From NCBI GenBank assembly GCA_030704615.1, contig CM060733.1, positions 48,918,001 through 48,982,000 on the forward strand: DNA of 64,000 nucleotides. Reading direction: 5' to 3'. Below are positions 7,448 to 31,848 of this stretch, in pieces. Positions within the stretch are counted from its first letter, which is position 1; each line of letters begins with the position of its first letter. The stretch is from Takakia lepidozioides. Lineage: Eukaryota; Plantae; Bryophyta. The position numbers and the translations under genes are program-made. A model generated the notes under the pieces. That model was not told where the DNA came from. It did no database searches and worked only from the letters and a program-made list of their open reading frames with translations.

Positions 7448-7950
7448 ATGTTTCCATTTGGTTTTAGTAGAACTTTCAAAATACCGATATTGCGAATGAA
7501 TCTGCTCCTAGACATATGGTTTACTGACCTTTGAACCTCAATCACAATGATGAGGTTAAAACCTGACTCCTACAGCTCCGACATCTGGATGCCAAACATC
7601 CGGTATACCTCACTCCACTTGATCCAGAGAAGGGGGACGAAGTGTATGAGAAGATACCAATGAGATCAGTGGAGGTCGACGATTCTTCGATGAAATTTTT
7701 CATTATCGGAGGGCAACACACGATCGTGGCTGCCAAGGTACTCGCTAACCATATCTATGTCTCTTGACTCTAGAATTCAACAAGTAGATTTGAAATTTGT
7801 CTAGAACCTCGACATTTATGTCAACGTTATATGCTATGGACGTCTATTAGAATGAAGTTGGATACTATCGAGTCAATTGAATGAATTAAATTTTTACAAC
7901 ATGGAACTGTGTCTGCAGGAACTTACTTAGATTTACCCTAAACCTTGCTC
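7448..7950 (+). pseudogene. ParB/sulfiredoxin-like domain exon of a decayed intron-containing gene, truncated 3' near the LINE
   Basis: Frame from 7501 reads SAPRHMVY*PLNLNHNDEVKT*LLQLRHLDAKHPVYLTP...MKFFIIGGQHTIVAAK|GT (7738). Both stops are TGA (CGA/Arg-derived). GT-AG intron 7738-7918; 1-nt frameshift near 7495. Confidence 0.55.
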
Positions 7951-8044
7951 GGTTCTGCCTCTACCTCTGCCTTACACAAAACCCTACCCTAAACCCTACA
8001 CATCATGAAAATGCTCAATTGCAATCTGAGAGGAACCAAGGGTG

Positions 8045-10050
8045 AGATTGTACTCATAAGACGTTGTTTGCCGTAGCCTTGTGGCCATTGACCCCGCGCC
8101 CAGTTTGAGCGGGAACAAAAGGAACAAAACCTACCTCTGTCAGGGGCTGACATTGGTAGTAAGACTTACCTTTATATAAAGAATTAATCCCGGTTTCCCA
8201 GATATCCTCTAGAAATCCCTTCACACAAGCATCAATCTGCTGTGTGTGATTTGCCCAAAAACTAGGCCTCAGGAGGGCCTGGGCTTTTGGCTCAGCCTCG
8301 AGACTTTCAAAGTTGGTAAACAGGGGTACAGACACAATTCCCTTAATAGAATTGAAGAGAGCGTCTCTTTGGTGAGAGAACCTCGGACAGTGTATCAGAA
8401 AATGAATACTGTCTTCAGATTGCCCACACAACGGACAATTGCGCTCTCCCTTTCCTCTTTGCTTCTGTTAGCTGTTCAAAGGTAGGCTTCCTGCCCTAAG
8501 TTTAAATTTCAGTCTAGTGCCGAGAGTGGGTAGACCCTTGAGGTCATCCAAGATGTCCTCCCCCATGTCACTGACTGGAAACAAGTTCAGGGAAGTTTTC
8601 TGCCTATCTTCATTTCCATCAGACAATCTCATGGCAACAGACATGGCTTTGGACACTACAGCCTCTAAGTCAGATTTATCCAGCAGGGTCAAGACTTGGG
8701 GATCCATGTCCAGGTCCTTGAGAATCTCTTCTACTCTCTTCTACCAGGACTTAGCCTGTTTGACATGGCGGTCCTGTTTCCAAGATATAGAGTCGATTAA
8801 CTTAGGATATCTGGTGTTGGGCATATGTTGCAGCTGACCCCACCATCTGACCTTGAATTCATCTCGTCGGGAGCTTAAGGACGGAATGCCAAACTCACCC
8901 CGAACAGCCACATTGGCTGTTTTGGAGCATGTCGACATACACTCCTTAAGCACCCCCACTTGAATGGATTCTACAGACTTAGCCTGGTTGGAGTTATCAA
9001 CCCATATAGCAGATTTGTACTTCCATGCAGGTCTAATAACGCGACAAAGCATGGTTTTCTTAACCTCAGAGTTGACCCCTCTGCAGTGGAAAAATTTAGT
9101 GAGCCCTAGACCTTTGCCCTTGCCAGTTTGAACAACTTTCCGGATATGTGCATCCCAATTACAATTGGAGGAAAACTGAACGCCCAGGTAAGTGTAGGGT
9201 TTAGGGTGGACAGGGATCTCTTGGGTACCCCACTGCCACTTAAGATCACTTCCTCCCTCTCCTCTGTCGTTGAATGCTACCACTGCACATTTGCTGACAT
9301 TAGCCTCTAGCCCCCAAAGATCAAAGTATCTCTTCGCGCAATCAATCAACTCCTGGAGATTGGTTGGAGTCTCTCCTATGCTTGCGAAGTCATCCGCAAA
9401 CATAAGGGTTGGTATGGTGGTATCACCCACCCTTAACCCTAAATCCCTCACTTTCCACATCCTCGAGGAGTTGATTGATGAAAACATTGAAGAGCAGAGG
9501 GGAGAGAGTACATCCTTGAGCTACACCTTGGTCTATGTCAAAGAAGTTGGACTTCTGTCCGTTAACAGTGACACAACTATGTTAACTAAGGGTGAGAGAG
9601 GGAGAGAGATAGAGACAGAGACAGAAGGGGTCTTAGGGATCCCACTGCGGGCTTGTTACCCTCCTTGGTTGGGGTGGATGTCCTTAAGGGCCGCTTGGAA
9701 GGAGTCATGCAAACGACGATCTTCTCAGCACTCTGGTCTTCCTCCTCGTTTGTGCTCTCGCTCTCTGCTGAGTAGTCAGCACTGGGAGTCGCTCCACTAT
9801 CCTCCCCTGGGTTGGTCTCCAAGTTGCTGGACTCCTTCTCCGCCACCCCCATGTGAACAAGACTCCTCTCCCTCAAACAAGTACTCCTTCGCACTGGGCC
9901 GTTCCACACATAGCGGGCAGTACGCGGGGGTCTCTCTTTCTCTCTACTCTCCCACAATTGCCCGGGTCACTCACAACAAAACGCCCTCACAAGCCCGGGA
10001 AGCTCAAAAAGCGAAGCACACACACTTAGTACGCTCGCGTGAGAGACATG
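8045..10050 (-). mobile_element. LINE, internally deleted: ORF1 5' remnant joined to the RT C-terminal half and CCHC tail
   Basis: 8741-9487 has LMFADD, NVSKC, YTYLG and AVRGEFG; 8054-8440 has CPLCGQSEDSIHFLIHCP. Endonuclease and RT domains 1-4 are absent. Related 3' ends occur at 40198, 40372, 55306 and 56080-56360. Confidence 0.85.
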
Positions 10051-10059
10051 AGGTTGTCC

Positions 10060-13000
10060 AAGTGCCGGGTTGCATCCGACGGTCCACGTCCATCCAATGG
10101 CGGAGATGGGATGTGGACACGTCGTTTTTTTTATTAAAAAAATTAGGGTACATATTAACCACTACACTAGTGTCTATAACCACTACATCCTGATGACATG
10201 GCAGTCTTCTAGGGGCTCTTGGGACCTCAACTACCTTTCATGAAATAGACGTAAGTCTGGCATGGAAGCAACGCAGGGGAGGCCATCTCTCGGCTCAGGT
10301 GTTGCGATCGCATTGCAAGTACAGGGAAGGAGGGAACAATGCAATGAAGGAGGGAAGGAATCATCGCATGAAACAGTATTTGAGCAGGGAGATAGCTTCG
10401 ACTTACAGTGCAGTGCCCTTGGAGCTCCAATCCAACAACCAAGCTTTGTTTTCAGCTACCCTGATAGCACGATACCGTTCATATTCCACCATCCCATTGC
10501 ATTCTCCTGGGGTAAGTGACTCCTCTTCTCCTCCACTTTTGCTCTCTGCTGAACCAGGTGCTATTGCCAAATCGCCTCCAGTGCCATCGTCGTTCAAATG
10601 TTTTGGGCTGCGTTCACTCTTTGCCATAGAACCTGCACTCTCCTTCAGCAAAATTGAAAAGAGACTGAGCCTAACTAAACCCTACAAGTGCACATTCAGA
10701 TTGAGCGATGGAGGAGGCTGTAGATATAAACACATGACAACAAACGGGCTAACGCCTTTGTGCTAACTACAAATGCATATGATGGGCTGGGCTACTGCTC
10801 ACAACCTTCAAGACATCCTATCTTAAAGCACTATAGCTTGTACCTAGAAGTAGGGTCTGCTAGGTCACCACGTAGTGACTCAATCCACTCTGAATATTAC
10901 TAAGAAGGTGGTTTGTAGATGACAAGAGACAGCTTTTTCCATTTTCTGCACTGTCAGAGTCATACTCACTCATTTTGTAGTTCTAAAGTTGAAATATGAG
11001 GTGTGAAACAACCACTCAGAAAGTGGTACCTTACAACTCTATGAGTAGAGACGTATAGTAGATTGTTGAAATTCTTGCTTTTTAGGGACTTGGTATATTA
11101 ATCTTGATTCTCCCCTCATACCAGGAAAGGAATTCCTTAGCATCATGGAGCCTGACAGAGCAGCTGCCGTGCTGAGATTACAACAGTGCGACGATGCTCT
11201 TTTTCAGCGTGAGGTTGCGCGGTGTCGAGAGTATGGTCTCAACAAGTTAAGATGCCCTTGCAATCACTGTAAGGGTGGACGACCGGTCTCTATAGAGAGA
11301 GTGAGAAAACATCTAATGGCCAATCATAGATCCCCCTACGTTTAGATCCTGGAGAGGAGCAAGGAGGCATGCTTCTGACGATGAATGGGAAGACACGGCC
11401 GTGGTGGTTGGTGACGACGTAGCTTTAGCAAATCATCGGACACAGGGAGAATTGGACAGAAATGTTGAGGTACAGCGCATGATCCAAGAGACCTTTCAGA
11501 TCATAGACACACCTGAAACTGGAAATGGGGCAAAAGTGGAATTAGATGACCTAGATGTTCCCGGTGACACGAACATCCCTTCCTTAGCCCATGACCCGGT
11601 TGCGGGTGGGGACTCTCACACTGATGATCCCATCTCATTGGAAGAGGCATGTCTACCTTTGTATGAAGGCTGTAAATCCTCTAAGCTTGCATCCACCATG
11701 CTTATAATGAATCTATGCGCAACACATGGGGTTACAAATGGCTTTGCGGATGAAATGTTCTCTTTGCTGCAGAAAACCTTGTTGCCACAACCAAACGTAC
11801 TACCCACATCTTTCTACCATGCAAAGACCATGGTGAGCAAGCTTGGGCTTGCTTATGAGAAGATCGATGCTTGCCCAAAGGGATGTGTGTTGTTTAGGGG
11901 GGACTTGAAAACTTCAGAGAGTTGCCCCAAATGTCAAAGCGCCCGATTCAAAAATGTGGGGAGATCCAAGGTACATGTTAAGGTGCTTCGCCATTTTCCA
12001 TTGATACCACGCCTTTTGCGTATGTATAGATGTTCTTCTATTGCAGAATTAATGACATGGCACAGTCGAAATGCAAGCAACGATGGCCTTGTGCGCCATG
12101 CAGCTGATTCAAAGGCTTGGAAACACATTGATGCTACTTGGCCCGACTTTGCAGCAGAGCCTCGCAATGTAAGGCTTGGTTTTTCCTTCGATGGAGTCAA
12201 CCCGTTTGGTGATAAGAACAATTGCTGGTCAACATGGCCAGTGTTGATGCTGGTATACAACCTACCTCCCAGGCTCACTACAAAGAAGTTCTTTGTCATG
12301 CTTGTTCTCTTGATTCCAGGAAAGCAGTCAGTTACAAGTGAGCACATAGATGTGTACTTAGCACCACTGATGGAGGAGTTACTTGTTTTGTGGAGGGGGG
12401 TTCGGGCATATGACATATGCAAACCTGTTGGTGAGAGAACCTTCATACTACGCGCCATACTACTGTGGAGCATCCACGATTTTCCTGCTTATGGCCTATT
12501 TGCAGGATGTGTCACAAAAGGCTACAAAAGGTGTCCAGTATGCGGTCCTCATGTAGATGCAAGACACTCAAAAGTTATGGGCAAAACTGTCTACCAAGGT
12601 CACCGCAGGTTCCTCCCTCAGGCCCATCCATACCGCAGGAACCGCATACACTTCAATGGACAGGTGGAGATGCGTGCGAAGCCACATCCGTTCACACCGG
12701 TTGAACAAGAGGCCGCTGGTGTTGAGGCTGAAGGTTATGACCTTGACCCCCGTGCTTTTCCTGATGCTGAAGTTCATCCAGCCAAGGTTCATGGTATCAA
12801 AAGGTGCAGCTGCCTATGGGATTTACCATACTGGAAGGTACCCCCTGCACTTGTACTTGTTTGAGTTCAATATTCTTTGTAAATGACAAAGGTAGTGCCC
12901 CTGTAGTGGTTACTTCTTACTTTCCGAGTGGTAAAGTAGCAGTACTGCATGTAATTTGGACTTCACATTAATAACTCGTGGAATGGTAAAAGGTAGTATC

Positions 13001-15963
13001 CATGATGCTCAGGAAGTTGTTGACATCACTTGAGAGGCTAATAATGCACTAAATGAGTTGTTTGAACCATTGAGGAGGGACTGTCATGCATCACAGCCAC
13101 TTTAGACATGAAAGTATATAGTGCTCATAAAGGAATCTGATTTGTATAGGACTGCAATCTGTCGGAATGTTCCTGAAATGGTGTCACCAATTGCAGGATC
13201 TGTTGCAACGCTACTTATTGGATCCCATGCATTGCGAAAAGATTTTTTGTGAAAACTTGTTGAAGACGATTTTCGGACGGAAGGACACGGTGAAGGTGAG
13301 GAACGACATGGAGGTAATCGGCATCAGACGTCACTTGTGGCTTCGGCCTGATCCACAGAACCCTTCACGTATCATGAAACTAGCAGCACCGTATGTTCTC
13401 ACTCCCGCTGAAATCACGATATTTCTTGATACTTTAGGGGCTATCAAAACTCCTTCGGGATTTGCAGGTGCATTTCAGAAACACATACACCCGTCTAGGA
13501 AATATTTGACAAGTATGAAGTCCCATGATTATCACGTTTTAATGCAACAGATTTTACCTGTGTGTATTCGCCATTGCATGGCGGGGGGCCCACGTGGGGT
13601 CATTATACGTGTGAGTCGCATTTTCCGCCGGATTTGTGCCAAAGTATGGGACCCTAATGAAATAGATTCATTGCGTGAGGATGTTGCTATAACCTTGTGT
13701 CTGTTAGAGAAAGAGTTCCCCCCTTCTTTCTTTGATGTCATGACCCATTTGCTAGTTCATCTCGTAGATGAACTAGACACATGTGGTCCGGTGTCTTCAC
13801 GGTGGATGTATCCCATGGAGCGTTACATGAAAGATCTCAAGGGATACGTTAGGAATTACGCAAAGCCATAATGGAGTATGGCTGCAGGGTATGTTCTTGA
13901 TGAGCCATGGGTTTCATGAGTGAGTATATGTAATCATTTGATGCAACTCAACGGCGGATTTGGGATGCAAATGCGGAGGAAGGGGTTGAGAACGAGGTCT
14001 TGGAAAGTGTCGGCAAAAAGCGGGACATGAGTGGAGCTGAGAGAGATGCAGCACATTTGTATGTGCTGAACAATACCAATGTGATGGTTCTTTGGGTGCA
14101 ATGAGTTCTTCTTTTCATTGCACCTTATTCATATCAAGTTCAAATGCAATTGTGACTGTCACCAGTGTAATAGAACCACCCACAAAGTCACAAATGTCAG
14201 TGGTTCATCGTGATATAACCACTTCTGTAGTAACTGAATGTCTAAGTAAATGACTTTTTGGAAGAGCATGTTCATTTACAAGTCATTCTGCTCACTCATC
14301 CAGTGGTTTTCAAAGTATCATTCATGCTAGGTATTTTTTGCAAAGTAATGCAACACTTCATTGCTAACATGTGTCATTTTTGTTGTCATTTTGTGACAGA
14401 AAGTATGCAACAGAGAAGGCACAGTTCACTGCAGACAGAGAGGCATGTGCTCGTGAGTGGCGTGCCAATCGTCGACGTCACCGCCGCCTTCCGGTGCCAT
14501 ACCCTCCCCATTTGTTGGAGTTTTCACCCCTACCGGTATGGATACGCCGTGTAGTCCAGACCCATGTCTCTAAGCATGGTGTTGAGAATACGGATGTAAT
14601 TCATTTGTCTACTCCCCCCTCATTGAGATCAGCTTCATTTCGCGGCATGAAGGCGTATGGAAATCATTATCGAGTGGATGACACGGAAGTCGTCTTCTTG
14701 TCTCTTTTGATTCCGGAGTTGCATCCGTCTTCCAGCAACAGAGCAGAAATAGTGTGCGTGATAGAAATCCAGTCATGTCACCATTAGAGTACGTTGGGGT
14801 CATCAAAGAAATCTTCAAATTGGATTATGGACGAGTGCACCCCATTGTATTTCGTGGTGCCTGGGTGCGGGCCAACCTCGTTGGACAAAATGCTACAATG
14901 AAGCAGGATTCGTATGGTTTTCTACTTTCAAATTTTGGGAGGATGTTACCCGCCAATGATCAGCCATTCATCTTTCCATCTCAAGTTGAACATGTGTTTT
15001 TTTCGGATGAGTCCCCAAGTTCGGAGTGGAAGGTAGTCATTCGGAAGGATCCAAGAGCAAAAAGGATTGTGGCGGACATAGATCAATGTGACATTGGAGA
15101 AAATGCAGATTTCGATGGCCTTCAGACACCGTCCACCTTATCAGATCAGTCAATACCTAGGTCATTAGATGGTGCCACGGCTCTAAATAAAGAAGACCTG
15201 GCTATGTTGGCTACCATTCAAGCGGCGTTTGTGCAACCAACCGCTATTCCAGTTGAGCAAAGTGATTCATAGGGTGACGAATATGTTTTATTGTTGGAAC
15301 CATTTGTTCAATAGCATCATGCCACAATGGTCTGGCCACTCGTCTATTTTTCAAAGTCTGTCACAGCTGCACAAACCACTTAAAATTTTTCATGTATCAC
15401 CCAAAAAGTGGTACCAATCACTTGTTTGTAGGCAACCACTAGAATAGTGGTTCCAATTACTACAGTATCTTTCACCACCCACTCTCCACCACTATCAAAG
15501 TGGTACAAATCAACGAGGTGTCTTTAACCACTCAAGATCAACGTGCAGCACTGTCCCCGTCCACGTGGAATATTATATTTATGAATGAATACATATTTCC
15601 AAATCATAAATCACAAATAAAATTTGAATTATTACACGTGGAGGAGCAAGTGGTTTCAATCACTTCCCATCACTGAGGTGTCTATAACCACTCACAATGT
15701 ACCACTGCACTCGTCCACGTGGAATATTATATTTATTAATTAAAATATATGACCAAATAAATAATAATAATAATAATAATAAATAATAATTTATTACACG
15801 TGGACTATTGAGTGGTTGAAACCACTTCCAACCACTGTCTGTGATGCCACCGTGGCATTTCATTGGGATTAACCACTGGCTAGTGGTTACTAGTGGTTTA
15901 TAGAGTGGAAAAAGACAGTAGTGGTTAAAGGGCCAGTGGTTATTCCACGTTTTTCTTCTAGTG
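10060..15963 (+). mobile_element. CACTA (En/Spm) DNA transposon; right end intact, left terminus missing
   Basis: TNP2-type transposase, many ACCACT/AGTGGT subterminal repeats at 10150-10190 and 15370-15950, and a right TIR ...TTTTCTTCTAGTG (reverse complement CACTAGAAGAAAA) ending at 15963. Confidence 0.9.
11145..15272 (+). pseudogene. CACTA TNP2-like transposase (transposase-associated domain, Transposase_21, DUF4218, DUF4216)
   Basis: Motifs CPCNHCK..VRKHL, IDACPKGCVLF, RHFPLIPRL, FDGVNPFG, HDFPAYG, LDPMHCEK, MKSHDYHVLMQ and SRWMYPMER. Intron 12838-13196; a second intron ~14101-14399 has an AT donor. Stops or frameshifts at ~11345, 13869, ~13905, 13931 and ~14690. Confidence 0.92.
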
Positions 15964-16497
15964 TGGTAGCTTAGTAGGACTTAGTGGGGGTGGCATAGGA
16001 CTCACCATGGGGCGGAGACCTTGTGGTGGGAGTCGTGGGGAGTCTTGGGACTCATCACGGTCCAATGGGGCCGTGGTGGGTGGGCCAAGACTTACCGCGA
16101 CTCATCACCGGGAGTCGAGGGTCTTCGTGGTGGTTCGCCATAAAATGGCAGGGTTGTTTGTGAAACCCCTGCGGATAGTCACAGAAGTATATATAGGGAG
16201 TAGTAACCTCGAGAACGGTGCAAGCCCGTTGGTGACCAAAAACTAGTGAGTGAGCGAGCGAGCCGGGAAGCGACCAAGGAGTGGGGAGCTATTCCGGACT
16301 GCCATCTACCAAAGGGAATTTCCACCAGGCCCAAATTGGTGGAGGGTCTTTTGGAGGAGCCAAGGGGGACCGTTATGTCCCGGTGAGCAGCCGAAGCTCC
16401 GAATTGGCCCGACGGCCAATTTGGGAGTTAGGCGCGCGCATCAAAGCGAGTAACTATGACTTGAAGGGGAGCTTACCGAAGTGAGGTGCGCGACACT

Positions 16498-16509
16498 TGG
16501 TATCGGAGC
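16498..16509 (+). promoter_or_regulatory. Primer-binding site, tRNA-iMet type
   Basis: TGGTATCGGAGC lies 2 nt after the LTR end; it has one mismatch to TGGTATCAGAGC. Confidence 0.85.
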
Positions 16510-16550
16510 TTAGAGTTCAGTACACGATCGTCCTTGAGATCGGCCTCATC

Positions 16551-19500: not shown

Positions 19501-20576
19501 ATGCTTTAAGTAGAAAGCAGCAGCTCATGTTGATGTACAGGGGCGAGACGGCGCTCCAAAGGAAGATCCGGAAGGCTAACCGGAAGGATGAGATGGCAAG
19601 GTCCGTGATGCGGGACTTGAGGATGGGGGTTAAATCACAGTTCCACTTATACAATGGACTGCTCCGGTACAAGCAAAAGCGTCTCTACGTGCTGAAGGGA
19701 GAGATCAGAGATAGTCTCTTGAGAGAGTGCCATGATGGCCTGCTTGCGGGCCACGGCGGAGCCAAGCACACCGCGGCATTGAAGAAAGAGTATTTCTGGC
19801 CCAAACTGAGGGAGGAGGCCGAGGAGTATGTCAAGACATGCACCATATGCCAACAAAACCGGAGCGAGTACAAAAAGCAAGCGGGGCTATTACAACCCTT
19901 ACCGATTCTAGAGGGGTCTTGGGAAAGTGTCTCGATGGATTTCATGACTACTATGCCGCTATCAAAAGGATTCGATGCAATCATGGTGGTGGTGGATAGG
20001 TTCAGTAAAATGGGCCATTTCATCCCCACCAAGGAGACGGCAATGGCGCAGGAGACGGGGCGACTTTACTTCGCCCACGTCTTCAAGCATCGTGGACTCC
20101 CGAAGGACATTGTCTCGGACCACGATCCAAAGTTTACAAGTAAATTTTGGAGGGCACTTTGGAAGAAGATGGGGACGAGACTCAAGATGAGTACGGCCTT
20201 CCGACCTACGACAGACGGCCAAACGGAAAGAGTGAATTCCGTGGTGAAACAGATCTTGCGGAATTATGTATCGGCAGACCAATCAGACTGGGTGAGTACT
20301 TGGATGCGGCAGAGTTATGTTATAATAACACAAAACACTCCGCAACGGGAGTTTCCCCTTTTGTATTGGTCTATGGAAAAGCACCTCTGGTGCCGACAAA
20401 TTGGTCCGCCCAAGACGTTGAGGAACCGGCAGCAGCAGCAGTGCTGGAAGAACGCGAGCGTTTGTTGAAGCTCGCAAAGTACAACATTGCCAAAGTTAGG
20501 AAACAGTATGAACGACAGACGAATCGGAAGTGGATGGAAGTTAAGGTTGAGGCAGGCACGGAGGTTTGGTTGAACA
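16551..20576 (+). pseudogene. gag-pol polyprotein, frameshifted
   Basis: Gag KPDTFEG..WLLELEQYF, zinc knuckle CFNCGERGHMAKKC, protease [28 protein letters not shown], RNase H EKEMKAVV/NVVADALSR, integrase HHCC and SMDF..VVDRFSK..TDGQTER. Gag appears internally deleted near 17035. Confidence 0.93.
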
Positions 20577-20990
20577 CACTACAACAGATGAGCGTTTTTA
20601 TGACTGCAAATATGACTATTTTTTCAATCTTATATGCGTTCATGACTACATGATTCTGAAGTGAAAAAAACTGCGTGATAGCGACTAGTCTTTAGGACTA
20701 CGTTTTGCAAGTCATAGCCGTAACTGCGTGCGTGGCACCTGTAGTCATGTAGAGGAGAGTGATGTAGTCACAACTCTATGATTTACATATGACTAATTAT
20801 ATGACTACATTGTCTGCTGAGCGTTGCCTGCATGGAGAGGCTTCAGTGGAACACGTGCACCACTGCGCAAGCGACATGTCACGCATTCGTGAGGGGATCA
20901 TATGACTATATGTTTGCAGAGCGATGTCTACATGGAGAGGCGCCGGATGGACACGTGCGCCACTGCGGATTTGACACGTCATTTTTTTTA
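20577..20990 (+). mobile_element. Left end of a second CACTA family
   Basis: CACTACAACAGATGAG starts exactly where the gypsy integrase breaks off. It is followed by many ATGACTA/TAGTCA subterminal repeats in both orientations. Confidence 0.85.
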
Positions 20991-21420: not shown

Positions 21421-21909
21421 ACCTCGATTGTCCCACCATTGACTGGGGTCATAAAAGTTCCACAGCTTCTCCTTGTCTCTGTTACCTGTTTTTGGATACT
21501 TTCTTATTGTCACGTTGGCAATTTCATGTCAAAGTCACTCCAAACTATCAAAGGTTCACTCAACCAGCTAACTTGCAGAATTCATAATGAAAATTGAGGG
21601 CCGATTTTGATAAGAGGGAAAAACAGAAATCGGCCCTCTTGGATGATTCTGGACCCACACTCTATCCCTGCTCCTTCAGCTATCCATGCCTCTACACAAA
21701 TCATGCATACATCCTCGCCTTGCTGCTAGCAACTGACAATGACAGCCTAGAATTGTTCCAACAAACACCCCAACCCTACTTATCACACTAGTTCCTATGC
21801 TCAATTGCATCTGCTACTCTCTATAATCCAACAGGCATTCACCTTCTTGCATCGATTGTCCCACCATTGACTGGGTTAGAAAAGTATTCATTCCACAACT
21901 TCTCCTCGT

Positions 21910-24900
21910 CATTTGCCCCTAGGTCTCCAAAGCCTCCATCCCGCGCCCTTGCTGTGCATACCCTGCAATCATCACACTCCATGACACCACATGTCGTTCA
22001 GCCATACTGTCGAACACTCCCTTTGCATCCTCAATGCACCCACATTTGGCATACATGTCCACCAAGGCAGTGTTCAGAATGACATCAGGTGCAATTCCAG
22101 ATTTGATGATGTCACCATGGATCTCTTTGCCCTTTTCCAGGGCTGCCAGGCTTGCACAAGCATTGCAATCACACACAAACGTGATCTGGTTACACTTCAC
22201 CCCTGCCCCCATCATAGGTCTCCAAGGCCATCCCGCGCCCCTTCTGTGCATCTCCTGCAAGCATGGCATTATATGACACCATATCTTGTTTAGCCATACT
22301 GTCAAACACTCCCTTTGCATCCTCGATGCACCCATATTTTGCATACATATCCACCAGGGTATTGTTCAGAATGACATCGGGTACAATCCAGCTCTGAAAA
22401 TGTCACCATGGACCTCTTTGCCCTTTTCCAGGGCTGTCAGGCTTGCAAAATCATTGCAAATGCACACAACGTGATGTGGTCAGTGGGCTTCACCCCTTCC
22501 CCCATCATTTGATCATAGGTATCCAAAGCCTCCATACCATGTCCCTGTTGTGCATATCCTGCAAGCATCGCGTGGGTCTCCAAAGCATTCCTACCACATT
22601 CATGCTTGGTAAATCCTGCCAACATTATATTCCACGAGGCATTCTGTGAAACACTTGGTGAGCATCCATGATGCTCCTGCACTTAAGGTGTTGAGTAGAA
22701 AACCATTTGGCGTGAATCCACTTTGGATATTGTGAGTGTGACCTGCTTTCCAGCTTCCAGACCTTCCATCTTGATGCACTTAAGCAAGAGACAGACATAC
22801 GTAGGTCCTAAATCTGCTGAAATGCCTCATTGGTCTAAAGTCTATAGAGCCTCTGTCAGTCTGCCTGCCGCAAAGCATCTTCACATGCCCAAAAGTGCAG
22901 CCAGAAGTGGCATTGTGGACTCCCTCTCTTGTTCCTCTTTCAGAAGCTGTGGTCATGGTTGAGGTGCCTGGTTATATCAACTGTGCCGCTGCAGCTGCAA
23001 CCTTTAGTTGACCATCTATCCATGCAGGTTTCTTGTAGCTATTGATCCACAGGGAATCACATTTGGTACAATTCCAGCTTTGGCGATGCAACCATGCACC
23101 TCTTTGCCATTTTCCAGGGTTGCCAGGCTTGCACACGCACTACAAACGCACACAAACCTGATGTGGTCGGGCTTCACCCTTCCCACATCATTTGCTCATA
23201 GGTCTCCAAAGCCTCCATCCCGTGCCCCTGCTGTGCATACCTTGCAAGCATCGCGTTCCACGACACCACATCTCGTTCAGCCAGAGTGTGGAATACTCCC
23301 TTCGCATCCTGAATGCACCCACATTTGGCAAACCTGTCAGTTTAGGATGACATCTGGTACAATTCCAGCTTTGACGATGTCAGCATGGACCTCTTTCCCC
23401 TTTTCCAGGGCTCCCAAGCTTGCACACGCATTGCAAACACGTGATGTGGTTGGGCTTCACCGGCCCTTCACGCAGCATTTGCTCATAGGTCTCCAAAGCA
23501 TTCCTACCACACCCGTGTTAAATCCTGCCAACATTATATTCAACGTGATCAAAGTTCGTTGAGGCATTCCGTTGAACACTCGGTGTGCATTCATGATGCT
23601 CCTGCACTTAACATACATGTTCACAAGGGTGTTGAGGAGAAAAACACTTGGCGTGAATCCAATTTGGATAATGTGAGTGTGCACCTGCTTTCTAGCTTCC
23701 AGACCTTCATTTTGATGCACTTAAGCAAGAGACAGACATACATATCTGAATCTGTTGAAATGCTCCTTGGTTTAAAGGTTGTAGAGCCTCTTTCTGTCTG
23801 CCTGCCTCACAAAGCATCTTCACATGCCCAGAAGAGCCAGAAAAGGCATTATGGACTCCCTCTCTTGATCCTCTTTTATTCGCTGTGGTCATGGTTGAGG
23901 TGCCTGATTTAAATCAGGGCTGCCAGGCCTGCAATGCACACAAACATGATGTGGCCGAGTTGAACCCCTTCCCCCATCATTTGCTCATAGGTCTCCAAAG
24001 CCTCCATCCCACGTCCCTGCTGTGCATACCCTGCAAGCATCGCACTCCACGACACCACATCTCGTTCAGCCATAGTGTTGAACACTCCCTTTGCATCCTT
24101 GATGCACCCACATTTTGCATACATGTCCACTAGGGTATTGTTGAAAATGACATTTGGTACAATTCCAGCTCTGAAGGTGTCACCATGGACCTCCTTCCCC
24201 TTTTCCAGAACTGCCAGGCAGTGTTTAGAATGACATTAGGTACAATTCCATTTTTGATGATATCCCCATGCACCTCTTTGCCCTTCTCCAGGGCTGCCAG
24301 GCCTGCAATGCACACAACCATGATGTGGCTGGGCTGAACCCCTTCCCCCATCATTTGCTCATAGGTCTCCAAAGCCTCTATCCCACGTCCCTGCTATGCA
24401 TACCCTGCAAGCATCGCACTCCACGACACCACATCTCGTTCAGCCATAGTGTTGAACACTCCCTTTGCTCCTCGATGCACCCACATTTTGCATACATGTC
24501 CACTAGGGTATTGTTCAGAATGACATTTTGTACCATTCCAGCTCTGAAGATGTCACCATGGACCTCCTTACTCTTTTCCAGAGCTGCCAAGGCAGTGTTT
24601 AGAATGACATTAGGTACAATTCCAGCTTTGATGATATCCCCATGCACCTCTTTGCCCTTCTCAAGGGCTGCCAGGCTTGCACAAGCATTGCAATGCACAC
24701 AAACATGATGTGAGAGGGCAAAACAGGCTGAAATAGGTCAAAGAAGAAGGTGCCCTCACCACATTGTCCTTGAGCTTGTGTCATGACTTGACCGACCATC
24801 AACCCAAAAGGACCTTTTGTGTGTGCTGCTTGTGTCTGTAGTCAGGTAATGTCGGATTGGTCTGTGAGATCGAACCACCATGGTGCAGCTGGGTAGGCAA

Positions 24901-25110
24901 AGATTGAAACACGGCCTGCTAAGACCAAGCTGACTCTCCCAAGAACGGCGAGCTCGCAAGAATGTTGTGAGCTTCTCCTCGTCTCATCTCCTCCTCCTCT
25001 CCTCCTTCCTGCATCATTTGCTCAACGCCTCCATCCCACGCCCCTGCATATCCTTCGATCATCGCGTTCCATCCCTCGCCTACATGGTGTGGCACAGGAG
25101 ACAAAAAAAC
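21910..25110 (-). pseudogene. PLS-class PPR gene remnants with multiple internal duplications
   Basis: Repeated GKEVHGDIIKxG..PNVILNTALVDMYAKCGCIEDAKGVFD.M.ERDVVSWS.M.AGYAQQGRG.EALE..EQM motifs. Duplicated blocks 22590-22975/23520-23905 and 23925-24130/24290-24500. Many frameshifts. Confidence 0.9.
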
Positions 25111-25238
25111 GCTAAGTCCCAACCCTCCTCTGTGTTCACGATTACCCTAATGGGCAACCTTATTAGCAACTTTTTGACTTTTTAACCTTTTGCACTTTGA
25201 TTCATTCTAGGTCAGAGGCTAAAATCCTGCTACCAGGC

Positions 25239-25569
25239 TTATCTAGAAAACCAAAACACCACGTAGACAAACATTTGACAGTGGTAGTAAAATATATTAC
25301 CATTGGGCTGGTTTGAACAATTGTTAGTAAAGTTATAGTAGAAACTTTCACTTTGAGTTATTGAAATTGAAATATATATATTATAAGTTATATTTTCATA
25401 ATTAAAGGTGTCAATGTTTGACTTAGGGGTGGTAGAATAAAGGACTTTGTAGTGAAACTTTTGATAGTTGTAGTGAATTGTTTTATTAGTATCAGCACAT
25501 TTCACTACGTGGTTCTAAAAATAGTGAAAAATGGCAAATAGTGAAATTCATAGTGAAATACCGACGGTG
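25239..25569. mobile_element. AT-rich DNA-transposon-like remnant with TAGTGAA subterminal repeats ending in ...CGACGGTG
   Basis: Sits between two copies of a duplicated block (24990-25205 and 25610-25860). It has repeated TAGTGAA motifs and a CACCG-type terminus on the minus strand. Confidence 0.35.
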
Positions 25570-25949
25570 CTGAAAACCATAGTGTGTTGAAGTGCCTCGC
25601 TGTGCCTATCCTCGCCCCTTCCTGCATCATTTGCTCAAGAATAGGTCTGCAAAGCCTCCATCCCACGCCCCTGCACATCCTGCGATCATTGCGTTCCATG
25701 CTCTAGGCTCGTGGATACTAAGAAAACATATGGTATGGCGGGAGAAAAAAAAAAACCCAAAAAGAGGCCAAGTCCCAGCCCTCTGTTCACAGCTGGCACC
25801 CTAATGGGTAACCCTATAAGCAACTTTTTGAAAATTTTTAATCTTTTGCACTTTGATCATTGATGAATGAACTTACCCAATGGATGAATACATTCGTGTA
25901 TGTGCCTTCAAAATGACATGTGTAGTGATGCAGTCGTATAATTAGAGCT

Positions 25950-26190
25950 GTGAAACCTCTAACTTTTAATGGGTCAAAAAATAAGCTGTCTAATATAAAT
26001 GATGCAGTGTGGCCATTCATCTCGAACATGATAGGATTATCCAGTGTTGTTGAGTACGTGAGTGAGAGCTTTGCAAAAGCATCTCGCGCAGCGATAGATC
26101 GGGATCATCCACTATGGTCTTGGTATGGGCGATATTTGGATCATTTTGTTTTCCATCCGTGGACAAGTCAGCCTAATTACCTTGGTATGT
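25950..26190 (+). pseudogene. Possible C-terminal fragment of an FCP1/NIF-like domain
   Basis: PLTFNGSKNKLSNINDAVWPFISNMIGLSSVVEYV aligns by eye with the NIF tails at 35694-35880 (DSVWPYLERL) and 29406-29580 (LNVPDYV). Confidence 0.35.
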
Positions 26191-26769
26191 ACTTCGCCAT
26201 TCATGTCAAAGTTACATAAATATTGAATGGTAACATGCACTCTTTTTAGGTATGTACTGTTCTTTATTTTAGTTTCTCAATTAGTCGGTTGTTTCTGATT
26301 GGGTTTGTGGGTTTTGATATTTTTTAGTGACTTACAAGTATGAGTCGGTATTTGCAGGATTGGGTGTCTCATTTTTTGCGTAACATGGCAGTTTCTGCAG
26401 GGACCTCCCTCCATGGTTTTACCCATAGTTGTCCAACAACTCAATATTTCATCTAAATTTATATGGTGTAGGGTGTACCAATTGTTAGATTGCAAAAACA
26501 ATCATGTACCAGAGAGCCATGGACTTTTAAAGTTGATTACTGTGGAGTGCATATGTTACACATAAAATCTTATGGACTGAAAAAACATCATATACATTCA
26601 TACAATGCCACAAAGAAAAACACACTAGGGGTGCCATTTTAAAATCCAACCCAAATCCACTTTTATATGGACTAGTTATCTTAGGAATTGAGAGCTATGG
26701 ACTATTTTGTACCTAAAAACATGTTGATTTGCTCTAGTCCAGAGCATCTTATGTTTTGGGTTTTTGAGG

Positions 26770-27520
26770 TGTCGTTTCGCACTAGCATGTGAACTCCCAA
26801 AGAAGACGCAAGTTTCCTTGCCCCTTGGATGGGAGTCACCCGATTTCGACACTACGCAAACACACGATTAATCCAATTTACCTCTCCCACTTTGTAAACT
26901 AACATGCTTTCTACACACTAGCCAATCATACCATGCATCACCATTCCTAACAAAATAAGACGCACAACATTTGGAAACCATTTCATTTATAACAAATTTG
27001 TATAACACAAGTTTTTGCAATCGGATTCCTGAGTTAGCTAAGCCGGACTAAGCATGCATTTCCTCCCCCACGATCCAAGGTTGATGTCCCCATCAACGCT
27101 TCTTCCGCTTTTGAGGTCGTCTTTCGAAAGCTGCAACCGCCTTGGATGCGTTTCTCATTTATGAGGCACGCACCCAAGTTGCCTCCACTTGATGATAGCC
27201 CTTCCATTTCACGAGATACTCCGTTTCTTGATTCTTGAACCTCCTCGACTTAAGCATTGCCTCCACCTCGTACTCAGGTTCATTTTCATGATCCAACAGC
27301 ATAGGTGGCGGACGCAACACTTGATGTCGATTTGGACGCGCTTCATCTTTGAAGTAAGGCTTCTAAAGGGAGACATGGAATACCGGATGCACCTTGCTAT
27401 TTGCCGGCAGCTCCAATTCATACACATCCTCATTCATAACCTTCCGGATGCGAAAGGGCCCCGCATACGGAGGTATGAACTTCGGACTCACTTCCGGAGG
27501 TAGTCGAAAATTACTAGCAA
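26770..27520 (-). mobile_element. 3' end of another chromovirus: integrase GPF motif, chromodomain, PPT and short LTR
   Basis: NFRLPPEVSPKFIPPYAGPF..VHPVFHVSL*KPY..EYEVEAML..EYLVKWKGY..EATW. PPT GTGGGGGAGGAAA at 27059-27071; the LTR begins TGCATG at 27058 and possibly ends CGACA at 26770. Confidence 0.85.
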
Positions 27521-30500
27521 GAACGGTTTGAATATCCTTAATGAGATATCTCATCCCAGGCTTAATATAGCCGGCTGTCGCATTGCAATGCTCATTGGAC
27601 CAAACAAAACAGAAGAGCTTTATCATATCAATGGGCATAAAAGATTGTAGCATCTTAAGAACAATGTCTCTTTCAGAGCAAGACCAAATTGCGACATGAA
27701 AGTTTTTAAAAAGACGCCTCAGGAACTCCACCGCTCCAGGCCGGGGAATGACAAAAGGAGTATCCGGGACCTTAATGGTCACATTTCTCCCTGAAAATCT
27801 GTTTTTGAACATCTCTCTTCCGGTCGGAGGTAGTCGATAGCAAAAGAGACCATTAACACTCAATATTATGAGCTTCATCCGCCTTTTTGGAGGAAAGGCA
27901 TCTTTGTCCGAAGAAGCATAATTATCCTGAAACCAATGTAATTGAGATTAGTGCAGATAGAACACCTATGCAACCTCGACATTTATGTCGAGGTAAATGC
28001 ATCATTGAGATTCACCGAAGATAATTTGAATATCTCCACGACACTACAGAGTCTTTATGAGGATATACCAAATGGATAAATGAATCACAATACTTTAGAC
28101 AAACTATAGAGTCGAGCATTAGAGAAAAATATGCAGCTACTACGCCTTCTGAATCCCTCTTCATTGAGATTCTGTAGAACAAATTCTATACACTTACATA
28201 ACGTTGACATAGACTTAATCCATGACGATGATGGTGTCATCTGGTCATGGGAAGAAAATTCAAACATCCAAAATTCCTTCTGTCCAACAGAAGAGAAATA
28301 ATCTACAATCTTTAATCATTAGCGGATCAAATGAGAGCATCGTCCACATGGTCGATTGAATATACAATGATATGCAGATACATTACAAGAATCAGTCGGT
28401 TACCTTCTGCAACCCTCTCGACTGAAATTTTGTAGAACTAGTGCGGGAGTCGGTTGAGTTTTGAAGGGACAGTAAAACATCTAACGCAATCTTCACGTCT
28501 GAGCAAACGATAAGCCTCTTACGAGTGGATCGCGATTTCTTCGAACACTCCGAAGTTTTTGGGCCAGACGCGCGACATAAATCATCCACTTGCTTTTTCC
28601 TTTCAAAGATTTGGACGTTGAGTGCACAAGGGGATGACATGAGGCCATTTGGAGATACATCCGGACTTGAGATCTTCATATCTTGAATTGAACGTCAAAT
28701 ATTGAGATTATGTTGGATTATAATGCAGGAGAAGACGTCGCTTCACTTCATCCAATCTTACCTGGAGTAAAACAAGATCATCAGAAAAAAGAAAAGACTG
28801 AATGAGGAAGACAAAACAAGAAAAATATAGGCAAAAATTCACCTTGTTCCTCCTCAAGTGTCCATTTGTCCATCCATGATGTTGTGGGATAAATGTTGGG
28901 ATATTCCTCCGAGGCAAATCGTCGACTTGCTGTACATCGTCAATACCTGAATGAGTTGTAATTGGATTGACATTGTGTTCAATGGATTGATGATATCACA
29001 TATCATCAAGCTTTTCAATCTCTTGAAGACAACGTTCCACCACAGCAAGAGAGATGGCTGACTGTCACTCTGTTGAGTGATAACCTTGTTTTCGCTCAAA
29101 TCCTCCAACTAAGATCTAATAGACTCAAGTCTTGTGGAAACTCCATTGTCACATTCAATAACACGATGTTCTTGAACATTTTGTACCGACTTTGAAACCT
29201 GTAATAGACACGACATGATCAAATGAGACTGAACCTCGATACATCCTCGATATTACTGTCGAAATTAGTGGAAAGTACACTTAGTGGACAACACAGGTTC
29301 TATGATGAAGCAACGTCATCAAACGATAAAACACTTAAAAGTTTTTAGCTACTTACAATCTTAGCATTCATACGGAACAACAACGATGTAAGCCTGCAAA
29401 ACATGCTAGATTGAACGTTTACTCAAAATTTGCGCAAAGTGAATATGTACATCAACCCCAATCCAGTTCTTAACAACATAGTCTGGAACATTTAATGGAC
29501 TCTCTAGCATCCCATCAAGAAACTTTTGAAGCACCAACAAGTAGTTGTTGTCGGTCTCAATTGACTCAAATGTCTTCAAAAATAAGCATGACCCTACAGG
29601 ATTGAGTAGACATTTTAGAGGAGTATCATCAATCAGAAGCGTATTTCTGTCATCGAACTTTCCTCTCGTCTTCACCCATAGCCCCGCAAGTGGCGGAGTT
29701 TTTTAATCTATCATTATAGTTTGGATAGACTTTGCTAGGACACGAAAGGCAATCCTCCTGCAACGTAATGAAGTTTGGTTGTGGTAACCATTCCAACATG
29801 ATATCAAGGACGGGCTTGAGGTTCCTTAGCTCCATGCAGCTCCAAATAGCTAGGTGGAATCGCTCATGTAAATGCTTCCACACCTCTCAATATTTCTCCC
29901 GCCTAAAAATTTGCCTTCTAATGACCCCAATAGGAATGCTGAAGTCGTTCTCGGAGTATTTAGGCACAGGATTATTAGATCCTTGAGACCGGATGATTTT
30001 GCAGAGAACACTATTCAGATCAAATATAATCAGACGAGATTTACCACTATCCATAGCTAAAGACGTAGGTGGTGGTTGAATCTGTGGATGAATAGAAGAA
30101 CAGAGTAAGGGATTGATTCAGTAGAAAATAAGGTATCAGTCGAACATATAAAACTTCACCTCGACACTAATGTCGAGGTAATCTACCATTAGCGATAAAA
30201 CCCAGAGTTGCATCCCTTCGGTAAAAAAGAAAGATATCACTGAAAAATGTGTTCATACGAGCGTTCGCAATCCTAGGACTTACTCCCTGTGGATACATGG
30301 CCATACTTACCATGTTAACCACATATTCCATAACATTTGCCATAACATAAGGCATTTGCCAGTGTTTCAAATAAAGTCTTGTCGTTCCAATTGTGCAGAT
30401 ACACCCTTTCAACGAATCCTAGAATTCAATGGGTTAAGTTGTAAAAAAAAACTATAGAGTGCAACTTGATTAGAAAACTCAAAACAAAGTAAGGATTACT

Positions 30501-31848
30501 GATTATAAATATAAGAATAAAGTCATATCTGCTTGTGAGCCTTCTGTGTTCATTGCTGGGGACTCGTCACTTCTTCGATGGAGTCGGTCGGTAACCTCGC
30601 CATTGAGGTTGATGTTCCCACAAAAGTTGTTGTCAGAGCAGTGTTCTTCACAGTCACATCTACTAGTCTGTTCGAAGCGTTGTTCTTCGAAGTGAGAGGT
30701 CTTAACGTTTTGGATTTTGTCATCTACATCTCAACTCATGGGATTTGAATTATGCTCTGGTTATCAACCATTCGAAGACTCAAGTTTCTTGCTATAAAAA
30801 TGATATGCGAATATCTTAAAACAATGAGAAAATCTCAGAACCATTTACACAACCAGCTCTGTATCAGATATCACGTACATTTTTGTGGTCCAGTTTGGTT
30901 TTCATCCTCCGCTTGCTGCTACGCCCCATTATTGGGGATACTATGCCGATTGAAAAATGACCAGCAGCCGGCGTGAATGTGTCAGGCTCGGAATCGTCAG
31001 CAATAGTGATTGATTCTGTCTCTATAGCTTGCTTATTTTTTACTTCCAGATTATTGCTTTCAACACCTACATCTCCACAACCACAGTCTCCACAACCCTA
31101 TCCAAGTCCTCCATATTGGTCTCGTCATTGAGCCACGTGCCCTCATTACCCTCATTATTATCCTCATCAGCCTCGTGAACTGCCTGCTCAACATGGTCAT
31201 CTTTTTTTATTTCCTTCTCCGTCTCGTTGTTGTCAGGACCACCAACTGATCCAACTGCTCTAACTTTTTCAAGCTTTTCAGCCCCCTGCTATTCAACGTC
31301 ATCATTATCCTCCTCCGGATCCTTGCCCTCAGTGGACTCGTCCGAGCTCCCACCACTCTCTTGACCATCAATGTCATCTTCTGCTTCCTCATCAGCATGT
31401 GGTTCTTCCTCAATCTCCTCTTTGTCCACAACATCCACTTTGTCCTCAATGTCCTCATCTTCATCAGAGACCTCCACGACCTTGTTTGTGTTGGAGGCAC
31501 CCTCATGTTTATCAGCATCTCCTTCTTCCTGAAACTTTATTCCTTTCTCCACTTCCAGAACCTTGAATGATGTCTCCATCTTATCATTGCAATGTTGAAC
31601 TTGGCTCTTCAGGTTTACATCCATAACATGAACTCCGTGTGCCTACAAAAGAACTGATCACTGTTATTTCCAAGTCAACAAAATTCAAATGACGAAATCA
31701 ATATAACAGTGGCAATTGACGTTGACATTCATGTCGACGTTTGAGTCGTAACAACGAGGAGGTGATTATCCTTAGCTCACCTGAAGATGGTAGCTGAGCA
31801 TAGGACCACCAAATATATTGAAGGCTGACATCCCTTCCTGACAGAACT
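27520..31848 (-). pseudogene. Large multi-exon gene remnant: methyltransferase-motif-I-like segment, acidic linker, two FCP1/NIF HAD-like domains
   Basis: Exon 31781-31848 spliced (GT-AG, 31780-31643) to 31642 gives FCQEGMSAFNIFGGPMLSYHLQ|AHGVHVMDVN. D/E-rich tract 31150-31540. NIF1 (29406-30060) has LIIFDLNSVL..FHLAIWS..NTLLIDDTPLK. NIF2 (27520-27878) has LIILSVNGLF..RPGAVEFL..FHVAIWS..FVWSNEHC..IKDI. Confidence 0.7.

Follow-up and report, generated by a model that had tools for sequence, protein, structure and literature searches.

Two decayed gene remnants of Takakia lepidozioides, a seed-free land plant, lying 20 kb apart on opposite strands, share a 22-bp palindrome, and we consider it somewhat probable that both are dead, truncated copies of one moderately repeated family of DNA-transposon type with a multi-exon cargo. 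They lie in the window analysed here, a stretch of 64,000 nt (GCA_030704615.1, CM060733.1:48,918,001-48,982,000, forward strand), with remnant 1 on the plus strand from 7451, remnant 2 on the minus strand at 27513-31848, and LINE, CACTA, gypsy and PPR debris between them. The cargo gene or genes of such a family would encode a conserved 'IIGGQHTIV-AK' N-terminal domain, an acidic tract and two NIF domains, the latter being FCP1/SCP-like HAD domains that have lost the DxDxT motif, and each short intron would hold one family-specific 22-bp palindrome. In intact copies the palindromes are predicted to be dimeric sites for an element-encoded DNA-binding protein, by which the element could recognise itself. 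What the window holds is inert debris: gypsy pieces, telomere-like repeats and rearrangement have cut the fragments. A preliminary description of this DNA had seen in the remnants the two ends of one transposon-borne protein; its observations are confirmed in part, and its interpretation is supported in part.

The shared palindrome

The palindrome, ACCTCGACAT-NN-ATGTCGAGGT (22 bp), is found at 7806-7827 in remnant 1 and at 27973-27994 and 30158-30179 in remnant 2. A search tolerating 3 mismatches returned 5 strand-matches against 0.00 expected, and all 8 of the exact half-sites in the window (ACSTYGACAT) lie inside the two remnants (0.43 expected; 0 in 100 shuffles). The palindrome is, as had been described, confined to them and absent from the other 59 kb. 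The subterminal motif of the CACTA element excepted, no other repeated palindrome was found in the window. Each half-site has 10 bp, AC[C/G]TCGACAT, and two halves build one palindrome. The first copy (7806..7827) has the halves ACCTCGACAT and ACGTTGACAT; the second (27973..27994), whose 10-bp arms are perfect, lies in an intron-like gap of ~88 nt; the third (30158..30179) stands ~8 nt beyond the GT that follows '...GFIANG'; and the fourth, of G type (ACGTTGACAT / ACGTCGACAT), occupies 31719..31740 in an intron-like gap of ~140 nt. These four palindromes, to which no strand is assigned, are element-specific inverted repeats within the two remnants, associated with the putative cargo gene. The exact half-site search also returned a single half-site, ACGTTGACAT, at 28201..28210, and degenerate copies are seen at 29244..29265, matched over 29247-29262, in the gap that follows NIF domain A, and at 26194-26209 (sequence search), the first two again without strand.

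The palindromes occupy non-coding gaps that resemble short introns, with a candidate GT donor 8-70 nt upstream of every copy. Half-site variants are mainly changes of TCGA to TTGA, that is, CpG decay, and the arms carry no compensating changes. Since the variants are of this type and uncompensated, decayed DNA sites fit the copies better than a selected RNA stem.

The two gene remnants

Both stretches are decayed gene remnants, as had been proposed, with frameshifts, in-frame stops and cut ends. Remnant 1, a single exon (7451..7737, plus strand) that ends in 'KFFIIGGQHTIVAAK', comes from a conserved plant gene, which we recognised by tblastx and tblastn against L001 and L002, two moss-type metagenome contigs that hold a homologue. 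Identity is 35% over 57 aa and 81% over a 16-aa motif, colinear to 'FPFG'. A 1-nt frameshift, located between 7463 and 7506, and two in-frame stops, at 7525-7527 and 7564-7566, mark the exon as pseudogenised. A first intron had been placed at 7515-7566, but this segment is coding: the copy of the second plant aligns in a single frame between 'FPFG' (7451) and 'AAK' (7737), and the supposed intron is exon, frameshifted and broken by stops. A putative GT...AG intron follows 'AAK' (7738..7918, plus strand), and in L001 a GT comes directly after '...IVIAK', which places the splice donor as in remnant 1; the L001 intron at this homologous position has no palindrome. A new finding, on the evidence of these alignments, is that the plant gene behind the 'IIGGQHT' exon is old and that both the gene and its intron position are conserved. 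The homologue in L001 and L003 runs on for ~170 aa and then stops, with no methylase or NIF match there, and an atlas search with the downstream exon of L001 gave no usable match. L003 (13 kb), the sole other fetched copy of this exon, shows neither a NIF exon nor a palindrome of this kind in its vicinity. Near 7930, remnant 1 itself gives way to telomere-like CCCTAAA repeats. A position inside the CACTA element was considered for it and rejected, since the CACTA subterminal motifs begin near 10150; a 5' terminal repeat match was also lacking.

The same exon had been called ParB/Srx-like, and here the profile, PDB, phage and large protein searches were all without a ParB match. At E<=10 it matched nothing in Pfam, NCBIfam, PHROGs or PADLOC, and neither the PDB nor a phage tblastn returned anything. 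A phmmer search of 1.84e9 representative proteins gave only two matches, bacterial Ig/MBG repeat proteins, which we rejected as spurious because repeats had inflated their scores, and a search for protein homologues gave no matches for this exon, for NIF B or for NIF C, a blank that carries no information given the length window and word index of that search. Its language-model neighbours were DUF6551, DUF3723 and ParB_N at 0.87-0.89, below the threshold of 0.9 for a lead. The nucleotide-binding motifs of ParB/Srx, GxxR, DGHHR and FGGCHR, carry a conserved arginine after the central strand. In the exon the sequence is IIGGQHT-IVAAK (window) or IIGGQHT-IVIAK (L001); Thr stands at the position of the expected Arg, so the putative ParB motif is without the arginine of GxxR/DGHHR. 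An AlphaFold2 model of the exon on a 3-row alignment was unusable (mean pLDDT 47.3, pTM 0.23). The 'IIGGQHTIV-AK' N-terminal domain may have a ParB/Srx-type fold.

Remnant 2 contains the two NIF domains that had been reported, B above the Pfam cut-off and A sub-threshold with a match to B. NIF domain B (27513..27947, minus strand) has lost its 3' part at the gypsy integrase; the piece 27366-27947(-) scores 29.8 bits against Pfam NIF (PF03031; gathering cut-off 21.8, E 5.7e-7). NIF domain A (29409..30117, minus strand), apparently one exon, is interrupted by a stop (29887-29889) and changes frame at ~29694, where other copies have 17 extra bases. The piece 29409-29702(-) stays sub-threshold against Pfam NIF (17.6 bits, E 3e-3), and tblastn relates domain A to B (E 3e-4) and to C (E 4e-4), a third NIF-like copy at 35697-36710(-), 4 kb away and without palindromes (Pfam E 1.7e-5). 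Pairwise identity among the three is only 25-30%, and searches of the PDB with their joint profile, or with NIF B by itself, gave nothing useful. The catalytic motif is present in none of them, FDLNSV (in domain A, 'FDLNS'), LSVNGL (in B, 'LSVNG') and LDLNGL (in C) standing in the place of DxDxT. Because DxDxT is lost, phosphatase activity is unlikely, and the domains probably serve for binding, not as phosphatases.

Upstream of the NIF domains, the acidic tract of the preliminary description is present (30867..31642, minus strand) as a series of ORF pieces interrupted by in-frame stops and a change of frame, and its core at 31292-31489 is 50% D+E; it has no Pfam family, and the acidic ORF had no record in a look-up for the exact protein. 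The 5'-most exon is a stump of 23 aa, '...AFNIFGGPMLSYHLQ' (31782..31848, minus strand), cut by an LTR at 31848/31849. It had been taken for motif I of a methyltransferase, of which only FGG is present, and no ORF piece of 27300-32000(-) gave a profile match to support this; searches for the N4/N6 methyltransferase domain (PF01555, permuted beta class), marked by motif IV (DPPY) and motif I (FxGxG), in Pfam, NCBIfam, PHROGs and PADLOC likewise had no matches among the pieces of remnant 2. The preset profile-search test for ParB/Srx and for a Rossmann methyltransferase thus gave no match for either in these fragments.

Remnant 2 is repeated in the genome. Across 27642-31745, up to 7-10 distinct contigs per position were recovered from DNA runs of the same organism at 80-99% likeness; they vary by indels of 17, 13 and 8 nt, and at hundreds of sites, mostly by transitions, all of them differ from the window copy. 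This repetition, seen in public contigs of the organism's DNA, is demonstrated for remnant 2 only. Both ends of the remnant are truncated by Ty3/gypsy pieces that lie outside the family. On one side stands an LTR (31849..32381, minus strand) 95% identical to the LTR at 15963-16495 and with no primer-binding site after it. On the other side is the SH3 tail of a gypsy integrase (profile positions 16-58; SH3_Tf2-1 E 9e-11) with a chromodomain (27162..27512, minus strand), a stretch of very high depth whose gypsy copies continue past 27512 as loose ends. The gypsy element is split, its pol breaking off near 20600(+) at SH3 position ~15, with SH3 16-58 found at 27363-27512(-); a single inversion was rejected as the cause of this split, the minus-strand LTR at 31849 being a misfit. 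The only DNA transposase in the window is the CACTA TNP2 (11401-15269), whose element seems to start on its 5' side near 10150, and among 87 ORF pieces of >=85 aa outside known TEs there was no DDE, Sola or DUF7869 family. Of the earlier proposal of a transposon-borne family, the repeated and transposon-like character of remnant 2 stood, whereas a family transposase or terminal repeats were not found in the window.

One family or separate origins

We infer that both remnants come from one family and that the palindromes of intact copies serve as dimeric binding sites. By blastn the remnants have no similarity beyond the 18-24 nt of the palindrome, and only about 22 nt link them. The one-family account is weakened by this narrow link and by L003, which lacks both the NIF exon and the palindrome. 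It is further weakened by the absence of ParB or methylase signal from every profile and sequence search, by the Thr in place of the ParB/Srx/DGQHR Arg and the unusable structure model, and by the missing family transposase, terminal repeats and RNA support for the introns. Moreover, the palindrome-less NIF-like copy 4 kb off could suggest a host gene cluster.

A more ambitious form of this account, possible but on the doubtful side, is a cargo cassette of a new kind on a giant land-plant transposon, with a divergent ParB-type clamp and tandem dead NIF domains, loading on its own intronic palindromes, be it as one protein or as neighbouring genes. The dead NIF modules could then dock on, or compete for, the phosphorylated Pol II CTD, and the element would mark itself and steer its own transcription or escape silencing. 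The preliminary description went further and proposed a single ParB-methyltransferase-acidic-NIF-NIF protein that loads on its own intronic palindromes and alters local chromatin or transcription like VANC, which we likewise hold to be doubtful. The specific palindrome common to both remnants would be in keeping with it, as would the ParB-clan-type families among the language-model neighbours of the first exon and the published ParB-methylase fusions in algal TE cargo (PMC12477816). However, neither a ParB nor a methyltransferase profile matched, 'motif I' comes down to FGG in a 23-aa stump, the homologue in L001/L003 reaches its stop after ~170 aa more with no methylase or NIF match, and the remnants lie 20 kb apart on opposite strands. 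Nothing in the window puts ParB-like and NIF exons together, and the view of the remnants as 5' and 3' ends of one protein finds no support here.

It is unlikely that we are dealing with unrelated pseudogenes, namely a decayed member of a local NIF-like cluster and a fragment of some other gene, that acquired a short mobile or recombination-prone palindrome, such as a tiny MITE or introner-type insert, as it spread into introns. The likeness between the remnants does end at 18-24 nt, the third NIF-like copy (35697-36710) lies on the same strand as remnant 2, and the palindrome is missing from the homologous L001 intron. Against this, the whole 4.3-kb NIF segment, intron-like parts included, is repeated at 80-99% in the genome and so is not a single host locus; the palindrome does not recur in the remaining 59 kb of a TE-rich window; and the three NIF copies are just 25-30% identical. 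An introner-type origin was rejected: the intron-like gaps have the palindrome alone in common, and are therefore not copies of one insert, and the L001 intron after 'AK' exists without it. Finally, an action of the palindromes as RNA, in intronic hairpins near 5' splice sites that would tune splicing or feed small RNAs, is very improbable: the hairpins at 27973-27994 (-18.7 kcal/mol, z -6.2) and 30158-30179 (-16.2 kcal/mol, z -4.9) and the placement of all copies 8-70 nt beyond a candidate GT donor speak for it, but the other two copies (-3.5 and -7.0 kcal/mol) are no better than shuffles, the arm differences are uncompensated, no RNA contigs were seen on the remnant 2 segment, and a stem length of 9-11 bp is low for a Dicer substrate.

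Comparison with known systems

If intact copies confirm the architecture proposed for the family, land plants could be added to brown, red and green algae as hosts of large DNA transposons with ParB-type self-recognition cargo, and the tandem dead NIF domains would suggest a Pol II CTD link undescribed for transposons in the literature found. The palindromes offer a directly testable candidate binding site. The contribution of the window is small, as it holds debris only; it adds a conserved first exon with its intron position, a NIF segment that is repeated, and NIF domains lacking DxDxT. At the same time, for these fragments, motif resemblance by itself led to ParB and methylase calls that profile searches do not bear out.

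The idea of a self-binding ParB-type cargo acting on its own inverted repeats has algal precedents from 2025 (PMC12477816; bioRxiv 10.1101/2025.02.11.637652). Sola1-1_Ec32, a giant transposon of 21.5 kb in Ectocarpus, carries a cargo gene with ParB-like and N4/N6 DNA methyltransferase parts (PMC12477816). The proposed Takakia family resembles it in that a large DNA transposon would carry the cargo gene, for which a ParB-type domain and an action on the element's own DNA are proposed. It differs in that the remnants have no ParB or methylase profile match, belong to a land plant and have no transposase in the window, and in the NIF domains and acidic tract, which are undescribed for the algal genes. 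In the red alga Bostrychia, Plavaka (EnSpm) elements have the ParB-like PAG3 beside inverted-repeat arrays, and the ParB-like N-terminus of PAG2/PAG3 is itself of very weak significance (HHpred E 0.29; bioRxiv 10.1101/2025.02.11.637652). Inverted repeats accompanying a gene, proposed self-binding and mostly degenerate copies are common to PAG2/PAG3 and the Takakia remnants. The Plavaka repeats, however, are tandem arrays beside the gene, whereas those of Takakia are single palindromes in separate introns, and PAG3 has a 2OG oxygenase and PAG2 a PF01555 and SET pair, neither having NIF.

VANC of the Arabidopsis VANDAL elements is an anti-silencing protein that recognises short motifs across its own element and is not known to have a ParB or NIF domain. 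It is given as an analogy in the Bostrychia preprint (bioRxiv 10.1101/2025.02.11.637652). Its motifs are not known as intronic palindromes, and the likeness to the Takakia family would lie, by analogy, in the proposed recognition of motifs of the own element. FCP1 and SCP1 are CTD phosphatases, and TIM50 is a relative without DxDxT. The Takakia domains are linked to these proteins by NIF homology (PF03031), B being above the cut-off and C significant, and they differ from FCP1/SCP1 in being tandem, in lying on a repeated element and in having DxDxT replaced. Lastly, the motifs of TNPA in En/Spm (CACTA) are also short, element-specific and arranged in inverted pairs, and the CACTA element of the window has such pairs (AACCACT..AGTGGTT) at 15433, 15813 and 15869; TNPA motifs lie within a few hundred bases of the element ends, whereas the palindromes span >4 kb inside a gene.

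The palindrome shared by the two remnants

The two gene remnants at 7451-7930 (+) and 27513-31848 (-), hereafter remnants 1 and 2, carry a 22-bp palindrome of two 10-bp half-sites and a 2-nt spacer. Allowing up to three mismatches, it was found in the window only at 7806, 27973 and 30158 (0.00 expected). Its half-site ACSTYGACAT occurred 8 times against 0.43 expected, a count reached in 0 of 100 shuffles, and all eight exact half-sites of the window lie within the remnants, which bears out the preliminary description of a shared and specific palindrome. A looser core pattern gave further sites at 31722, 29247 and 26194. The half-sites are of two types, ACCTCGACAT and ACGTCGACAT, with a recurrent variant, ACGTTGACAT, carrying TTGA in place of TCGA, the change that CpG decay would be expected to produce. 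When all palindromes with 9-bp arms were scanned, about 37 were found in the window, each unique except for two recurring families, namely the shared 22-bp one and the AACCACT..AGTGGTT palindromes in the subterminal region of a CACTA element.

Every copy sits in a gap of 88-223 nt between ORF pieces, and begins 8-70 nt past the GT. Since these gaps begin with GT and end with AG, the palindromes are plausibly intronic. The one possible RNA run, which covered the LTR and two small patches only, lent the introns no support.

Coding content and decay of the remnants

The exon of remnant 1 ends in KFFIIGGQHTIVAAK, followed by a GT donor, and had been described as ParB/Srx-like. It gave no match at E<=10 in four HMM libraries and none in the PDB or in phages, and two matches among 1.84 billion representative proteins were rejected as repeat-inflated similarities to bacterial surface proteins. 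Its AlphaFold2 model reached a pLDDT of 47. ParB is suggested solely by the language-model neighbourhood (three nearest named clusters DUF6551 0.89, DUF3723 0.88, ParB_N 0.87; 8 of the best ten neighbours in a common family or clan), in which scores below 0.9 rate as a lead only. Moreover, the motif has Thr at what we take to be the position of Arg in the ParB, sulfiredoxin and DGQHR-type families. We put the chance that this exon is ParB-like at about even.

A scan of JGI metagenome contigs detected a homologue of this exon in two near-identical plant-type contigs, L001 and L002, whose AT-rich sequence has 34% G+C, and in longer versions of these from other samples (L003 and L004). Identity between remnant 1 and L001/L002 is 35% over 57 aa and 81% across the IIGGQHTIV-AK motif, the GT donor position is identical, and upstream the homology reaches 'FPFG' (window 7451), keeping to a single frame. 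Relative to this moss-type homologue the window exon has a 1-nt frameshift and two in-frame stops and, because the homology is colinear in one frame, the segment 7515-7566, previously read as an intron, is broken coding sequence. Three stops mark the homologue, too, as a pseudogene. In L003, a locus assembled in at least six samples, it lies between an alpha/beta-hydrolase-like gene (380-1484, -, GHSFGG) and a gypsy element (8100-13197, +); neither a NIF exon nor a transposase nor a ACCTCGACAT-type palindrome occurs in these 13 kb, and the 170 aa that follow the homologue gave no family match. Since the same exon and donor site occur in contigs of a second plant, the exon can be assigned to a gene family of long standing in seed-free plants. 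In the window, CCCTAAA-like plant telomere-type repeats lie at 7935-7990, directly 3' of remnant 1, where the homology ends.

Read along the minus strand, remnant 2 begins with a 23-aa exon stump cut by an LTR, followed by an intron-like gap with a palindrome, the acidic tract already reported (50% D+E over 66 aa), uncharacterised ORF pieces and NIF domain A (30117-29409). Beyond A come a gap holding a degenerate palindrome copy, additional pieces, a further gap whose palindrome is perfect and, last, NIF domain B (27947-27513). The two NIF domains were recovered as described: B scores above the Pfam cut-off (29.8 against 21.8 bits), A matches weakly (E 3e-3), and A, B and a third copy, NIF C, match one another at E ~3e-4. 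Because their mutual identity is only 25-30%, A and B are domains that diverged long ago, as opposed to products of a recent duplication. The DxDxT motif is absent from all three (DLNSV in A, SVNGL in B, DLNGL in C); in HAD phosphatases its first Asp is the nucleophile and its second the general acid, so the NIF domains are probably pseudo-phosphatases. NIF C (35697-36710, -; "LLILDLNGLL", Pfam NIF E 1.7e-5) has an apparent frameshift and lacks the ACCTCGACAT palindrome; it may be what is left of a host gene, or else belong to another element. The proposed methyltransferase motif I did not survive, since no piece of remnant 2 matched a methyltransferase in Pfam, NCBIfam, PHROGs or PADLOC, and the motif comes down to the tripeptide FGG in the 23-aa stump.

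Remnant 2 is broken by a stop at 29887-29889, by stops within the acidic tract and by truncation at both ends. In addition, the frame of NIF A changes near 29694, the very point at which 17 extra bases are present in other copies. At 27512 the frame of NIF B passes directly into positions 16-58 of the gypsy integrase SH3 domain, a point from which contigs of other gypsy copies carry on into the beginning of SH3, absent here. Elsewhere, copies of the LTR run on from 31849 into a primer-binding site; here the LTR runs into NIF family sequence.

To assess repetition, Logan contigs from two same-organism DNA runs, a plant metagenome and what may be an RNA run were mapped onto 27300-32400 (5101 letters) at 80% likeness. 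The gypsy parts were enormously repeated. The NIF segment was covered end to end by short contigs of 80-99% likeness, with up to 7-10 distinct contigs at single positions and with indel variants of 17, 13 and 8 nt as well as small replacements. At hundreds of sites in this segment the window differs from every contig, and the differences are mostly transitions (238 against 107 transversions in X1). One contig matched the window exactly at a depth of ~50 and others had depths of 600-900, depth being no measure of copy number. The segment exists in several diverged copies, probably tens, of which the window holds a decayed one. These copies rule out a single-copy host gene for remnant 2, the only remnant to which the argument applies.

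Transposon debris around the remnants

The window (G+C ~45%) is plant DNA full of transposon debris, and both remnants lie within it. A LINE reverse-transcriptase fragment (8054-9487, -) precedes a CACTA element (11070-15963, +) with TNP2 transposase, DUF4218 and DUF4216 at 11401-15269. The 3' end of the latter, CACTAGAAG, abuts a gypsy LTR at 15963, and its 3' subterminal region (15370-15960) is dense in AACCACT/AGTGGTT motifs, several of them palindromic; a search for a matching 5' terminal repeat found none. Next come a Ty3/gypsy element (15963 to ~20600, +) with LTR (15963-16495), primer-binding site and gag-pol, and a decayed, stop-ridden PLS-type PPR repeat array (21850-25700, -), internally repeated with periods of ~290, 375 and 790-940 nt, which looks like a pseudogene amplified through local duplication. 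A gypsy integrase tail with chromodomain (27162-27512, -) and a second LTR (31849-32381, -), 95% identical to the first, flank remnant 2.

The gypsy chromovirus lies in complementary pieces (15963-20650, +; 27162-27512, -; 31849-32381, -): the plus-strand copy ends at about SH3_Tf2-1 position 15, and the minus-strand fragment, which includes the chromodomain, begins at position 16. The inverted LTR stands 4.3 kb beyond the tail, without a primer-binding site, and the NIF fragment occupies the gap. A single inversion was rejected as the origin of this split, as the order of the pieces does not fit.

Elsewhere, CACAGCC-rich tandem arrays at 2-777 and 5175-5375 (period 30 bp at 369-777; 9/18 bp, CCGACACAG, at 5175-5375) lie on either side of a 4.4 kb ORF block, whose long open ORFs (973-5011, +) match no Pfam family. 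A "CTD-like" decapeptide repeat (DTAYHSxSRR) in the ORF at 2-664 is the translation of the 30-bp array, across which a second frame (234-683) is likewise open; CTD-like repeat ORFs of this genome may accordingly be repeat arrays that do not code for protein. Outside the studied region, two ORF pieces of at least 85 aa hit the mitochondrial carrier family (best E 8e-15) and another hit Integrase_H2C2, indicating one or more ordinary host genes and an additional piece of a retroelement.

Interpretation and known systems

The observations of the preliminary description are partly confirmed and its interpretation is partly supported. We lean, by a modest degree, towards both remnants being pieces of a single repeated transposon family, in whose intact copies the palindromes would serve as DNA sites bound by an element-encoded dimeric binder; the window itself holds only truncated debris. 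That a single ParB-methyltransferase-NIF protein acts on these palindromes, as first proposed, we consider unlikely: against it stand the failure to match any methyltransferase profile and the L003 homologue, whose surroundings give the fusion no support. Slightly less likely still are two unrelated pseudogenes with a common mobile motif; blastn found no similarity between the remnants outside the palindrome. An RNA role is very improbable, DNA sites being preferred over RNA hairpins because the half-site sequence recurs without compensatory changes, and two of the four palindrome copies fold no better than shuffles, an argument that the decay of the window copy weakens.

The mechanism first proposed is a hypothesis already published for algae, in works on Ectocarpus and Bostrychia. 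In Ectocarpus, the 21.5 kb Sola1-1_Ec32 carries a gene for a 1104-aa ParB-like and N4/N6 methylase protein opposite its transposase (PMC12477816). The Plavaka elements of Bostrychia have two accessory genes, PAG2, which combines PF01555 with SET, and PAG3, which joins a ParB-like N-terminus (HHpred E 0.29) to a 2OG oxygenase and is adjoined by tandem inverted-repeat arrays; the analogy to VANDAL/VANC has been drawn for these genes (10.1101/2025.02.11.637652). We found no literature on DUF7869, nor any that treats DUF3723 and ParB together. The family described here would represent a new form of a system first reported from algae in 2025; if true, what would be new is the land-plant host, the NIF pseudo-phosphatase modules and the placement of the palindromes singly in introns.
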